Source: Orbicella franksi (lineage: Eukaryota). Taken from it: a stretch of 64,000 bases of DNA. Shown here piece after piece: positions 2,612 to 12,018 of this stretch; position 1 is the stretch's first letter; each line of letters begins with the position of its first letter. Under the pieces are notes generated by a model. It was not told where the DNA came from, searched no databases, and was given only the letters and a program-made list of their open reading frames with translations. Made by a program: the position numbers and the translations under genes. The stretch spans positions 5,332,001 through 5,396,000 of the forward strand of contig OZ116702.1 in the NCBI GenBank assembly GCA_964199315.1, read 5' to 3'.

Positions 2612-3667
2612 CATAAACATCCATTAAGAATGAATAATAGACATTTGTATGAACCATTTCTGACCACTGAGCCACTAAGAACTCTTAACAAGCTTGGTCG
2701 TTACACTTGGCTCAATTCCCAGAGACCCAGGTGCTGTTGTTATTTTCTGATGACCGTGCTCTCTTGAGTGTAGCTGATTGTCATTTTGTTAATATTTCAA
2801 TGCACTGCTTACTTCACATATTGCTGTCAATACTAATTGTGAGAGAGCCTTTATAATTCCATCAGTTTTGCAGAAGACTTTCCTAGAAATTGAGCTGTGA
2901 ACCGACTCCAAAGGGTGAGGGACTACCTTCAATAACAAATATCCACTGACAAAACAAACCAGAAAATGACAATCAAAGTAAGTAAATGTTATTTTCTTGA
3001 AATGGAGCCATCGTGGAAATTTTTCGAAGCTCCTTGGTGGATGCAAATATTTGAAAAAAAAAACAAAATGGAAAAATAGAACTTCGCTCACCAAACCCTC
3101 TGCAAAAGATCTGGTCAACTAAAGGCACTTCATAATTTAAGCCTATAATGGGAAAGTTCGAGTTCCAATGATTCAAGTGATGCATTAGGTGGTTTTACAT
3201 CTTCAATGGAGGGAATATTTTGTTGACCCATGAAAATCACAGACAAATTTATTCTCTGTATACCACAAGCATACCAGGCAATTTTGGACAATATCTCCTG
3301 TGAATAAATAAACAATACCTTCCAATTTGGCACTAAAATATGCTTGGATATTTGCCTGTGGACATTACCTGTTTTGCAAAGCAGTTTTCTGAGAGCATGG
3401 CTCAAGGAAAACTGTGAGGACAAGGACACAAATCTGAGCATATTTTTGCATCAAAATTATGGAAACATTGTGTTGATATCTACCCTTCAAATTTTTTTGT
3501 GTTGTAGACAGAAATTTACCCATATAATGTGGCCCGAGTCACAGACAATCTACACTGCTGGTATATGTGAGTGTCCAGCTGCACCGCAGGTTAATGTAAT
3601 GAAGTAATTGTTGGTTACAATGAAGGTTACAGCTTGCACACTTAGCAACTTTCAGAAATTGCAGACA

Positions 3668-6215: not shown

Positions 6216-6782
6216 TTTTGTAAATGAAATTGAAAAGCTCTCTCGTAGTCCGAATACGCTAGTTTATGGGTCTTCCTTCTTGACTGAAGCTTGATCGTCA
6301 TAACATCGGGTCCAGTCTTCTAGCCGTGATGACATCATATTCTAAACGCGGAATGCACGACGTAAAAGTCCCGGGTTATATCATATTCCGCAAACAGAGT
6401 ATAAATTTCAACTCTGAAAAGATCTTAATGGATCAGTTTTATATTTCTTACGGTGATAAATGTCATGTTATCAATTTTCTATAAGGCCCGCTACCTTTAC
6501 CACTCCCCCGCCCCAACCCCTCAGCACAAGCACACGCACACTACCCTAAGACTGAAAAATAAAATATAAAACTTGAATGAAATCAATTCGTTTTATCATT
6601 TCACTGAATGTAAAATAAATAATAAAAATATCTTTATTTGTAGAAAATGCCATTCATTCGTGTTGGTCAATTATTGGCTTTCTTGACAATTGACAGCGAG
6701 CCTTGTTTTGCTGACCAATCAGATTTGAGAGTTGTTATATAATACTTCCAGCCAATACTATTTTTCCCGCGATAATACCAAC
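6216..6782. promoter_or_regulatory. Putative bidirectional promoter/5'UTRs between LITAF and POFUT2
   Basis: The divergent ATGs at 6215 (-) and 6783 (+) are 567 bp apart. CCAAT boxes lie near 6715 and 6752, and the start context is ACATGGCGG. TSSs cannot be seen from sequence. Confidence 0.55.
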
Positions 6783-9700
6783 ATGGCGGTTGAATGGAAG
6801 TTGTTCCCTGTTTTCTTTTTAGTATTAAGTCACCGTTCAGCCGTTTTCAGCGAAGATTTGGATGACGATTATATTGCATTTGAACCTTCAAGTCAGCATG
6901 GTCTAAATGTCGATTCATTGCAAGCAAATAATGGAACACAATCACACAGTAAGAGGTACCTACTCTACGATGTGAATCCTGGAGAGGGGTTCAACCTCAG
7001 GCGTGATGTGTACATGAGAGTGGCAAATATGATGAAACTCCTTCGAGAGAAGCAGAACTGGGTCCTTGTCGTTCCACCGTGGAGAAAATTGTACCACTGG
7101 CGATCCCCGATCGAACAAAACGCGCTCCCTTGGCGAACATTTTTCGACCTGGAAAGCTTGAATCGATACGTTCCTGTCATAGAATTCGAAGACTTTGTTA
7201 AAGAAACCGGCGAGCCGGCTTTAGACGAAATCCTTTATTTACAGGGCTACGCCGAGGGCTGGAAAGACGGACATTGGGAAGAAAAAATAGATGATAGAGA
7301 TTGCATTGACAGACCTGTTTACCACAAGGATGAGGACGGCCTTTATCGCGGGTACTTTTGGGGGATGGACGATGTCTTCGCGCGTAAATTTAAATGCCTA
7401 TCTGTCCAGGGTACCGCAGCCATATTGGTTCCTACACTCGAAAAGACCAAATCAAGGTTGGATTATTTTTAATTTGAATTTTTTACTGACACCTTTTTTG
7501 GAGTACATTACATGTTGGATTTTGCGTCGCATTGAAGTTAAGTTATTTATATTGATAGCTCAAAGATCAAAGGGACTTGAAATGAATTCAATTCCACGTG
7601 TCAACCTCTTTGTTTTTCACTGGTATGTTATGGCTAGTCTTAGGAAATTCCCACAAGGGGTGGAAGATAACCTTAAAATAGGTTTCAAAGTTAATCGTTC
7701 TCATTTAATTCGTGTACATTTTGTGGCATTACTGAAGTTATTTTAGTCAGTGAATCGACAGACTGCTTTTAATTGAAAAATGATTGTTATAATGACTTGA
7801 CACAAAAATAACAAAGAAGATTCCATTTGATTTTTTTCATTTCTATGGAATAAAAATTTTATTATCAGTGTTGAAAATTATAATTTTTTAAAAGAAAAAT
7901 TTATCAAATAGCTTAAGAGAAATTATTTACTTGGTCTACATTTAAGACAATATATGGGTACTTTTTAAACAGCGAATTGAAGATACACATGACCTGTGCA
8001 TTGTTTTCTTTTTATACAATTACACAAAGGTATCATACGTAGCATTTCTTTGAAACTTCATGTAACCTGAAAAGATTTAAATTAGCTACTTTACAGTTCA
8101 TAGGATAGCCATGAAGGGTTCTGCTCCACCAATTTCCATTGCAGCTCTTTGCTATCTACTATTGTTATCAACTGGAGAATGTTATCTTTCATTTGACAAC
8201 ATGAGAGCCTGACAGAAGAGATTTTAAGAGACTCTTATATTTGTATGACAATGACGCAGTGATTTTTGAATGACCTTTAAAAGGAAAACCAAACATTTTA
8301 CATTTCACCTTCATGTTGCACCATTCTTACGTGCACTAATAACAGCTTCTGATGGCTGTAATGTACACAGCACACGCTGGTTGAGAAAAACCATGGAGGG
8401 GTGTTGCTGCAATATTGCCTTTTCGGCAAAGGAAAGTGAGGTTGGAGCTACTGAAATATTTTGATACATGGACTTTTCATTTCTGGACTCCCATGTAGTC
8501 TGGATTCAAGCCTGCAGCTTAGCAATCAGTCTCCAATTAACACTTGTACACTCCACAGGCTCTCTAAAGTATTTTATTATTTTTCACTGTATTCCAGATC
8601 GGTGTTTGTAGACAGATTTGAGGAAGTGTTGCACATCATTTATGGAGAGAAGGATTACTGGGAGGTAGTGTAACTTGTGTTTTTTCGATGTTTTGTTTTT
8701 ATTGTTTCAGGTCTGTGTTTGTTGACAGATTTGAAAAGGTTATGCACATCCATTATGGTCAGGTGGAGTTTTATAAGGTAACCCCTAATTTTTCAATAAG
8801 TCTTACCTGAGAATTTTAACTTTATTACTGCAAAAGATTGACTTAACTCCTCTTTATTAGAATCTTAAAATAAACCCCTGCTACCTCTTTAAAATAAATT
8901 TGAACCTTTTTGCAAAATAAGCCATTCTTTGTTGGTTTTTTAGGACACCATCCCTCAGTAGGTCAAGTCTCCCTTTGGCCTAAGTGGCCAATACTGTTAG
9001 GTGTTTGTATTGTGTAGGAGCAATCTGCTACCCCTCCCCCCTGTGTTGCATTTAAGGCTATTGCAGGTACCTCTCCCTGACAGTTTGCTTAGAAGGGTCA
9101 TGATGGTGCTGTGTCCTTAGATGGGACACGTGTAGGCGTATAAATGCAAACTGATGAATTCAATGGTGGGTAGAAACTAAGCGATGGACTTGCATCCCAC
9201 CCAGGAGAGTAGAGATATTCCTGATCACCTCATGCTGCTGAACCAGATATAAGTGAAGGCCTGATGAGCCACAAGCGGGTGAAGATCCTTACCAGTTCCC
9301 ACCATTTTATGGAAATCAGTCAGCTTTTTCAGAATGACTCAGAAACCCAGGAAAGGGGACTTAAGGGAGTTTAGATCTTTGGCATTTTGGCACTTGTTGC
9401 TTCTGAAGTTGGTCATCATTTATCCTATATCTGCCCCTGACTATGCTTATATGCATATTTTATACCTTTGATATACTTTGTCCCAGTATTATAAGAACAA
9501 ACAAGATGTTGATCAATCTGGGTTAATATTTGTCACAGGCGAGAAGAAGCCTTGTGTTTGCCAAGGACTTAAGAGAAGAAGGAGACAAATTTCGCAGAGA
9601 AGTGTTAAAATCAGATGATGAGAGAGATGCAACTGTCATGGATGCTGACTGGACAAAGAACCAGAAAAAGGAAGGAACTGCCAAGGGAGGTCCGTACCTA

Positions 9701-11714
9701 GCTGTTCACATGAGGAGAGCTGATTTCCTATATGCTCACCCTGATGGTGTCCCGTCACTGGACAATGCTGTGAAACAGATTAAGGAGATTCTCAAGAAAG
9801 AAAAGCTGAAGATGGTTTTCCTTGCAACTGATGCAGATAAAGAAGGTGATTCTTTAACACTTCTGGCAGCTAACTACAGTTTAATTTCCAGGAGTGTTCA
9901 AAATTCATTTTCTCATGGGAACACCAACATGTTATCAAGCAAATAAAAGAGATAAGAATAAAGGGATAAGTGAACAAAGTGATATTGTCTCAATGCACCA
10001 CCAACTTCTCGGAATTGACGCTAAAAGAACTATATGGCTGTCTGGTCTTGAACTTGGGACTGAAACGGTTGAAACCCTTTCATTCTCAATAGTGCTGAAG
10101 TAAGGAAATCGTGAATGAAAGAATTTACATTCAGTTTACAGAAATTATACACAAAACATACAGCTGAGTAGTCTGCTGGCAGCCGGTTTTTCTCTAAGGG
10201 TCACTAGGATGAGTGTTTAGTCATCGTGAACACAAAAGAGCAGTATGGTGGTGGCCGAGCAGGGAAGAAGGCTGGACAAGGGCAGTATGCCGCGCCCATG
10301 TCTCGTCCCATTCCCCTTTAGCCAAAACGTCTCGCCAAATAACCCGTACTGAATTTCGAGAGAAAAACAGACTGCCAGGAGTGTAACAGCTGACCTGCAA
10401 CAAATCTTTGCCCAATCAGCTTTCATTTGAATGGTTACTAACATTGGGGCTTATTATAAATTACTTAAATCTCCCAGTACGGCACAATAAATAGTATGTA
10501 CCGCATGAAACTGCTGCTCAATAGCTTTCATTTTATGGTCACTCACTAAGGGTTTATTGACAAACCAAAAAGTTAGTACCACATGAAAGTACTGCTCCTG
10601 AGTAGCCTTTATTAGGGGTGGTGAATGGTAAATGCTAGACACTCAGCTAGAAGTTGTGACCAGCATTTTTCTTTGCATACCCTGAGACATTTTGACTTCT
10701 TCAAATGCAAGACTGAGACTTCAAAGTGTTTTAAATGTAAGCTTGAGAAGTTCAGGTTCTAAGATGTTCAGACATCATTTATATATAATAAAAAACAATT
10801 GGTACTTGAAGACTTTCTTGGTCTAACTTGCAAAAAAATCAAGACTGTGAGGTGAACATGACCGCTAAAAAATGAGACTGCAAGACCTGGGAAATTCGAC
10901 AAAAATTTGGCCAGACACGTGGTTTTTGAAGGACCATTTGCTGCCCCTTTTATTAAATGGTCCCACACTAGGGTTTATCCACAGACTGAAAGGTGTTTTA
11001 ACTGTACTATTAAGTTCAGTCTTCGGGAGGTAAGGGCTTAAAAGAGCACTTGCTGGAAATTTAACTATCATTAACCAATACTCATTGGAAGAATTTGGTT
11101 TTTTCCCTGATGATCAGAATTTCCTTTTAACTCCACACAAGCAATATTCTCTCTCTGTTGATTGAAAATATTGAACTGACAATTGAATTGAAGATATTGG
11201 TCTATCATGTAGGAAGCCCATGTTCTCCTAGTACAAAAGTTTTTCAAAGCACTTTTGCAACCAACTCTTCTCAGTCCTACACAAAATGTTTATGCCAATC
11301 AATTTGGAACACATTTTGTCAATCTGCTCTCAAGCTTTTAATATATCAAGTTCTTCAGGAATAGAGCGCACTCCAATTAGCTCCAAGCAACACTAAGAAT
11401 AATAGACAACACTAACAATAATTCCTTGTCTTTCAGATGTAAATTATTTGAAGAGCAAGCTGCCCCTTGTGAAGTATGACCCTCCAAAAGAAATTTTGAA
11501 AAATTACCGTGATGGAGGAGTAGCCATCATTGATCAGTGGATTTGTGCCCATGCACAATACTTTGTTGGAACATGTGAATCTACTTTTTCATTCCGTATT
11601 CATGAAGAGAGAGACATATTAGGTTTCCATGGTGACAAGACTTTTAATTGTCTCTGTGGCGATAACAAAATTGGAAAATGTGAACAACCATCAAGGTGGA
11701 GAGTAGTATATTAA
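6783..11714 (+). CDS. POFUT2: GDP-fucose protein O-fucosyltransferase 2 (about 441 aa); exons 6783-7456, [8598-8664 or 8711-8777], 9539-9845, 11437-11714
   Basis: Signal peptide; YDVNPGEGFNLRRDVYMR; GGPYLAVHMRRADF; IIDQWICAHAQYFVGTCESTFSFRIHEER; WRVVY C-terminus. All junctions are GT-AG with consistent phases (2,0,1); the CDS is 1326 nt when one version of exon 2 is used. Confidence 0.95.
8598..8664 (+). CDS. POFUT2: POFUT2 alternative exon 2a (SVFVDRFEEVLHIIYGEKDYWE)
   Basis: Acceptor ttttcactgtattccag, donor GAG|gtagtg, 67 nt, in frame with exons 1 and 3. Homologous to human [22 protein letters not shown] (recalled). Confidence 0.75.
8711..8777 (+). CDS. POFUT2: POFUT2 alternative exon 2b (SVFVDRFEKVMHIHYGQVEFYK)
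   Basis: Acceptor ttttattgtttcag, donor AAG|gtaacc, 67 nt, same phases as 2a, 13/22 aa identical to 2a. Confidence 0.75.
9110..9292 (+). mobile_element. Degenerate SINE copy in POFUT2 intron
   Basis: gatggact.gcatcccacccagg.gagtaga...catgct...gcctgatgagcc matches the 3' half of the SINE. Confidence 0.55.
10168..10385. mobile_element. Short MITE-like repeat (agtctgctggcag ... cagactgccaggag)
   Basis: Degenerate inverted termini in a POFUT2 intron. Confidence 0.4.
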
Positions 11715-12018
11715 ACTAACAAAACTACTGCCTAGATTTCAAATTGCATATTTTCAAGTGGGTGGGTAGCCAGTGGATTTTATTGATGACAGGAGTAAGA
11801 TATTTTGTGCAAATTTATTGAGGTTATTAAATATTTTCTGGGAGATGGTTTCAACTGATTGTGGATAATTAATTATTTTGCAAAAATGAGTAAAGGAAAA
11901 CAATACTTTTTTTAAAAAATTATAATACCAATGTGAATTGAAGAGATCAGATCCTTGCAGTTGTGCTTGCTATTCTTACTTACAAAATATCCGCCAAACT
12001 AGCCCATCTAGGATTTGC

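Follow-up and report, generated by a model that had tools for sequence, protein, structure and literature searches.

In the POFUT2 gene of the coral Orbicella franksi, exons 2a and 2b very probably form a genuine mutually exclusive pair, old and maintained by selection, which arose by tandem duplication of a single 67-nt exon and of which one enters each mRNA. The gene occupies positions 6783–11714 on the + strand of the window (the whole 64,000-nt stretch of DNA that was analyzed) and is compact, with five exons (1, 2a, 2b, 3, and 4; Table 1). It is identified from its sequence as POFUT2 (GDP-fucose protein O-fucosyltransferase 2, GT68). In fact, the PF10250 (O-FucT) domain is matched on exons 1, 3, and 4, and the best solved relative of exon 1 is human POFUT2 (4AP5; E 4e-66), as against only 3e-4 for POFUT1. 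The catalytic glutamate (human Glu54) and the donor-site arginine (human Arg294), whose roles in POFUT2 have been described (PMC6096484; PMC9828666), are both present and align with the human and C. elegans motifs; the catalytic glutamate lies in the GEG motif of exon 1 (NPGEGFN) and the donor-site arginine in the HMRR motif of exon 3. Exon 1, from whose last base (7456) junction reads depart, ends in AG, two bases of an arginine codon that is completed by the first base of either 2a (A) or 2b (G). Conceptual translation with either exon gives a product of 441 aa, and the two products are predicted ER O-fucosyltransferases that differ at 9 of the 22 residues of the segment. The window locus is 99.8% identical over 579 nt to the O. 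faveolata assembly GCA_002042975.1.

Two further observations concern the gene and its surroundings. An extra CTC follows position 7436 in most RNA reads (25 of 31 in run X23, 9 of 11 in X24, and 4 of 9 in X22); it adds one leucine (TLEK to TLLEK), which matches the RefSeq protein of O. faveolata, the window carrying the shorter allele. In both O. faveolata (L004) and the coral locus L022, POFUT2 has a zf-LITAF-like gene head-to-head on its upstream side, and the neighborhood is therefore conserved.

Table 1. Exons and spacer of the POFUT2 gene (positions in the window)
Feature	Position	Strand	Description
Exon 1	6783..7456	+	ATG and signal peptide to donor; ORF, donor GT 7457-58; Pfam O-FucT 1.3e-20
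Exon 2a	8598..8664	+	67 nt; tail HIIYGEKDYWE, vertebrate-like; net charge without His -4
Spacer 2a/2b	8665..8710	+	46 nt; donor of 2a, TAAC motif, polypyrimidine tract and acceptor of 2b
Exon 2b	8711..8777	+	67 nt; alternative version, tail HIHYGQVEFYK; net charge without His 0
Exon 3	9539..9845	+	phase 0 start (ARRSLVFAK…); Pfam O-FucT; junction reads into 9539
Exon 4 (last coding)	11437..11714	+	stop codon 11712-11714; Pfam O-FucT; junction 9845>11437

The duplicated exon

Each exon of the pair is preceded by a pyrimidine tract and AG (8596–97 for 2a, 8709–10 for 2b) and followed by GT (8665–66 and 8778–79, respectively), and the two are identical at 47 of 67 nucleotides and at 13 of 22 amino acids. 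A preliminary description of this DNA had already given the layout (length, common phase, own AG/GT sites, distance, and amino acid identity), and it proved correct to the base; the net charges that it reported were obtained again on recomputation. Exon 2a is translated as SVFVDRFEEVLHIIYGEKDYWE and exon 2b as SVFVDRFEKVMHIHYGQVEFYK. The first eight residues are equal and the remainder has diverged; the strand, an Asp-Arg-x-Glu motif, His12, Tyr15, and Gly16 are common to both versions, and systematic differences between a and b are found at positions 9 (E/K), 14 (I or V/H), 18 (K/V or L), 19 (D/E), and 22 (E/K). The frame shift expected from double inclusion was also right, as 2a and 2b read together lead to a stop at codon 251; with neither exon, the stop comes at codon 235. 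The pair was found once in the whole 497-Mb assembly, and its origin by chance is excluded because the same pair is present in five other coral loci. Within exon 2b, 7 of 14 reads of X23 carry a G>A change at 8728, which turns Arg into Lys (AGA to AAA) at segment position 6. The arginine at this position is highly conserved and the lysine variant occurs in 2b only, probably as a heterozygous allele.

Splicing of the two exons

Splicing was followed over the region 6700–11800 in the raw reads of four polyA RNA-seq runs (X21, X22, X23, and X24), which come from three bulk samples and two studies. Exon 1 is joined to 2a (7456>8598) by 15 reads (1/1/9/4 in the four runs, in that order) and to 2b (7456>8711) by 16 reads (0/3/10/3), and exon 3 is joined to 2a (8664>9539) by 20 reads (1/1/14/4) and to 2b (8777>9539) by 15 reads (2/0/12/1). 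The junction between exons 3 and 4 (9845>11437) has 59 reads over the four runs. Usage of 2a and 2b is about 1:1 (about 53:47) in all three samples, and no regulated switch was seen between them, the ratio staying close to parity throughout these bulk samples. The reads entering and leaving each exon are balanced, which fits the use of one or the other per mRNA. Neither a junction from 2a to 2b (8664>8711) nor one from exon 1 to exon 3 that skips both (7456>9539) is found among the junctions listed for the four runs. Regarding the junctions that the preliminary description had proposed to count, the four expected ones were recovered at 15–20 reads each, and 8664>8711 was absent among the junctions listed. 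Its claim of two usable exons has been confirmed, and the case that it had considered damaging, in which only one exon is ever spliced, does not apply, since both are joined to the flanking exons.

A less strict choice can also be considered, in which double inclusion or skipping is a regulated unproductive outcome and POFUT2 dosage is set through nonsense-mediated decay. Both aberrant combinations carry early stops, and decay would hide such mRNAs, the absence of rare junctions holding among the junctions listed; however, junctions of 8 reads were listed and neither aberrant one was with them. This, together with the balance of counts in and out of each exon and the conserved, very short spacer of 37–46 nt, makes such a dosage control unlikely.

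Heavy RNA coverage on both strands was also observed at 10120–10980 (intron 3) and at 9265–9435 (between 2b and exon 3), where many reads match only in part, have loose ends, or show joints that go back. These intron stretches are probably a dispersed repeat that is transcribed elsewhere and lies outside the POFUT2 mRNA.

Probable mechanism of exclusivity

The exclusive choice of strict one-exon use would be enforced in two layers. In the first, the spacer would put the branch point of 2b too near the donor of 2a for joint splicing, and U1 on the 2a donor would compete with U2 on the 2b branch point. A branch-point-like TAAC motif, the putative branch point, is separated by 8 nt from the 2a donor and by 37 nt from the 2b acceptor. 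With a spacer of 37–46 nt, any 2b branch point inside it lies less than 46 nt from the 2a donor, and splicing from 2a to 2b should therefore be sterically blocked. This shortness is conserved in all the corals seen, whereas the other introns of the gene measure 761–1591 nt. The preliminary description had considered the distance probably too short for efficient splicing; the short distance stands, both at 46 nt here and at 37–46 nt across corals, and the block that would follow from it is what we infer from this geometry. In the second layer, since 67 is not a multiple of three, mRNAs with both exons or with neither would meet an early stop and be removed by nonsense-mediated decay.

Exons 2 and 3 of alpha-tropomyosin, reportedly described by Smith and Nadal-Ginard in 1989, are said to be the textbook pair of this kind, in which the branch point lies too near the donor upstream of it. 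As in that gene, the coral pair consists of adjacent alternative exons with an intervening intron that would be too short or too badly arranged to be spliced. On the other hand, the whole coral spacer measures 37–46 nt, its branch point is putative, and the choice comes without a known tissue-specific regulator. Tandem duplicated exon substitutions have been also reported in human and other vertebrates, in which homologous exons swap and thereby tune one region of a protein; according to those studies, such substitutions are mostly ancient and well expressed (PMC9741552; PMC8373072; PMC5740500). The vertebrate POFUT2 sequences examined, however, have one version only, and the POFUT2 event is one of marine invertebrates, corals among them.

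Another way to force the choice of one among several exons is given by the docking-site/selector RNA structures of Dscam and ATE1 (PMC6071210; PMC7797038). In the coral pair, no conserved competing pairings of this type were found across the loci compared, where only weak pairings occur, and this kind of control is not supported. For example, the 2a donor (8656–8672) can pair with 9472–9488, located 67 nt before exon 3, at -19.8 kcal/mol, a value equaled by 5% of shuffles. This duplex was not seen in Porites, Acropora, or Montipora and recurs only in L022, where each of the two donors pairs some 75 nt before exon 3.

Conservation and selection in corals

The a-then-b arrangement, with spacers of similar length, extends across the corals compared: 46 nt in Orbicella (window), 42 nt in Porites lutea (L002), 39 nt in three Acropora contigs (L008–L010) and also in Montipora (L011), and 37 nt in the coral locus L022. 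The version-specific residues (positions 9, 14, 18, 19, and 22) are fixed across the coral genera examined. Pairwise dN/dS is 0.03–0.13 for 2a and 0.05–0.7 for 2b, and these values, below 1 in both cases, indicate that both copies are under purifying selection. Within a species, the synonymous difference between a and b is 0.60–0.69, with about 30% nucleotide divergence; the synonymous sites are near saturation, and therefore the duplication is old. These same synonymous differences give no sign of recent gene conversion between a and b. In Nematostella there is a single a-like exon, orthologous to 2a, and no second copy was found within the 580-nt downstream intron; the isoforms of Hydra show no difference within this segment. 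Both the search of other anthozoans and the estimation of dN/dS for each exon had been suggested in the preliminary description; the former gave the pair in Porites, Acropora, Montipora, and L022 and a single exon in Nematostella, and the latter gave constraint on both exons across Scleractinia.

It could still be argued that the pair stems from a recent and neutral duplication, involves a pseudo-exon without use, or was produced by misassembly. The sole hint in that direction is that the older O. faveolata assembly (GCA_002042975.1) has the whole locus twice, whereas the pair is present once in the assembly of the window. Both exons are spliced, the copies differ at 30% of their nucleotides with near-saturated synonymous sites, and both copies are present and intact in five other coral loci. 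This explanation is thus extremely improbable, and we consider it refuted by the splicing of both exons, their conservation in corals, and their synonymous divergence. As for the older O. faveolata record itself (L004), the pair lies there at 3319–3498 and at 9946–10125, 6.6 kb apart, and the RefSeq models at this locus are cut to 383 aa; the assembly of the window has one copy, and the doubled pair is likely an assembly duplication.

Position of the segment in the enzyme and contact with TSRs

The segment aligns without gaps to residues 214–235 of human POFUT2, with the offset checked on the catalytic Glu54, in accordance with the mapping first proposed. A single-sequence fold of the O. faveolata protein P0319 was uninformative (pLDDT 32), and the Porites 2a isoform, which is 81% identical to the window protein and stands in for it, was instead modeled from an alignment. 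The model (pLDDT 87.7) has a GT-B fold superposable on solved POFUT2 (TM 0.96 and rmsd 1.5 Å to 4AP5), with a strand at 226–230, a loop at 231–242, and a helix from 243. In terms of segment positions, residues 1–5 form a beta-strand, 6–17 a loop, and 18–22 the beginning of a helix that extends into exon 3. According to this model, the segment runs from the final beta-strand of the N-terminal domain through the following loop and one turn into the helix after it.

Data on the contacts come from a nematode enzyme with mammalian TSRs. In the solved complex CePoFUT2–RnTSR4, Tyr225 contacts Asp13 of the TSR, and Leu221, together with Tyr145 and Trp141, contacts Met22; the two contacted TSR residues are non-conserved (PMC9828666). 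By alignment, with the numbering checked on Glu52, Leu56, and Arg63, Leu221 and Tyr225 correspond to segment positions 11 and 15. The segment had been placed near the TSR-binding cleft, and it is indeed found on the TSR-binding side, with the equivalents of both residues within it. The tyrosine at position 15 is unchanged between a and b, and position 11 varies only between Leu and Met, in Orbicella only. The a/b-specific positions 9, 14, 18, 19, and 22 flank these two contacts, and the net charge shifts by about +4, which makes an altered handling of TSRs plausible. The two loops may quite possibly shift which TSR domains are fucosylated well, a reading to which we give slightly less than even weight.

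Alternatively, both isoforms might be real and maintained while the choice of TSR is unchanged. In such a case, the difference could adjust the stability of the enzyme, how active it is as ER conditions vary, its handling of the donor, or its contact with another ER partner, or the exons would merely divide expression between cell types. This is conceivable but somewhat doubtful. It agrees with the near equality of the direct contact residues in both versions and with the nature of the changes, most of which exchange charges in the loop or at the helix cap, as well as with the recognition of TSRs by POFUT2 mostly via water-mediated contacts, with few direct ones (PMC6096484; PMC9828666). However, the altered residues flank contact residues on the acceptor side, and the doubling in several phyla concerns this segment and no other, as if its surface lent itself to functional tuning. 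A complex prediction for P0319, the POFUT2 of O. faveolata, and a TSR exon from the same genome (L012:1498-1668:-) scored 0.00 and is evidence neither way.

With respect to the possible clients, the genome contains at least 1088 first-look candidate TSR domains; 150 were scored, and 150/150 lay above the cut-off. Dense arrays of single-exon TSRs are located at 18.17–18.52 Mb of C15 and 3.457–3.494 Mb of C5 (both in G000), and the potential clients of POFUT2 are accordingly very numerous. In cnidarians, TSR proteins have been shown to promote symbiont colonization (PMC5446238).

Distribution in other phyla and origin

Both versions are present in databases. Among the RefSeq POFUT2-like isoforms of O. 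faveolata, X1 and X2 have a segment identical to 2a and X3 a segment identical to 2b. X1/X2 isoform pairs are recorded in Acropora digitifera, A. muricata, A. palmata, two Montipora species, and Porites lutea, and in O. faveolata, Acropora, Montipora, and Porites the sole differences between isoforms fall in this segment. These isoforms represent the same event as the pair of the window, but they are automatic models without comment, and those of O. faveolata are truncated (383 aa). Literature text searches found no paper describing this POFUT2 exon pair, and the papers that mention POFUT2 together with "mutually exclusive" do so in unrelated contexts. The preliminary description knew of no mutually exclusive pair in POFUT2, which holds for papers and fails for databases, as RefSeq has both isoforms in O. 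faveolata and in many invertebrates.

RefSeq pairs that differ only in the same 22-aa segment have been found in Ptychodera, Patiria, Acanthaster, two Asterias species, and Amphiura, and also in two crinoids, three sea urchins, a chiton, and Crassostrea gigas, with three versions in Mytilus. Overall, segment variants are recorded for hemichordates, for each of the five echinoderm classes, and, among molluscs, for a chiton, mussels, and an oyster; one version only is present in the vertebrate, amphioxus, priapulid, and horseshoe-crab sequences examined. In the DNA of Ptychodera (L006) and Patiria (L007), the exons are again tandem and 67 nt long. Unlike in corals, the vertebrate-like copy is the second and not the first, and the spacers measure 97 nt (Ptychodera) and 500 nt (Patiria), so that the short-spacer block is not applicable there. 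Mollusc pairs differ from the coral one in that some variants are 2 aa longer. In Mytilus (P0200, P0301, and P0223 of Mytilus trossulus; P0312 of M. coruscus), two of the three versions are 2 aa longer, and one M. coruscus gene model joins two versions in series, which looks like an annotation error.

The origin of the coral pair can be approached from shared residues. Coral a and b have in common Phe7 and Ile13, which are cnidarian-specific and recur in Nematostella and medusozoans, where the exon is single; this agrees with a duplication inside the coral lineage. On the other hand, a tree of the 22-aa segment, whose 22 columns are too few to separate one origin from several, places coral b beside the single exons of medusozoans, and coral a beside Nematostella and the bilaterians. 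Such a grouping, together with a 2b-like medusozoan tail, would agree with an earlier duplication followed by differential loss. The medusozoan single exon (P0020, P0151–P0154, and P0161) ends like coral 2b ([VL]E[FY]xK), and not like 2a or Nematostella. To judge from these few residues, this likeness could be convergence or the trace of an older duplication. More broadly, we tentatively suggest, at less than even confidence, that the acceptor-side loop of POFUT2 might be a preferred site of exon doubling across animals, dividing a large and diverse TSR clientele between isoenzymes, either once before the cnidarian–bilaterian split with many losses or by several independent origins.

Biological significance

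In kind, the coral pair is an ordinary case of mutually exclusive exons produced by tandem duplication, which automatic annotation had already captured. What makes it interesting is its place, the substrate-binding loop of an enzyme that has been regarded as single, along with its recurrence across phyla. For the evolution of splicing, it offers an example of the same exon turned alternative in distant phyla, each with a different spacer geometry. POFUT2 is usually treated as one enzyme for all TSR domains, acting via a tolerant, water-mediated interface. A conserved second version of the loop, expressed at parity and with two of the few direct contacts, suggests instead that TSR-rich animals divide the handling of substrates among isoenzymes. 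If the wider doubling of this loop is true, the coral clients of the divided isoenzymes would include TSR proteins implicated in symbiont uptake (PMC5446238). Finally, since coral TSR proteins act in symbiont recognition, the POFUT2 isoforms could bear on the biology of the symbiosis.
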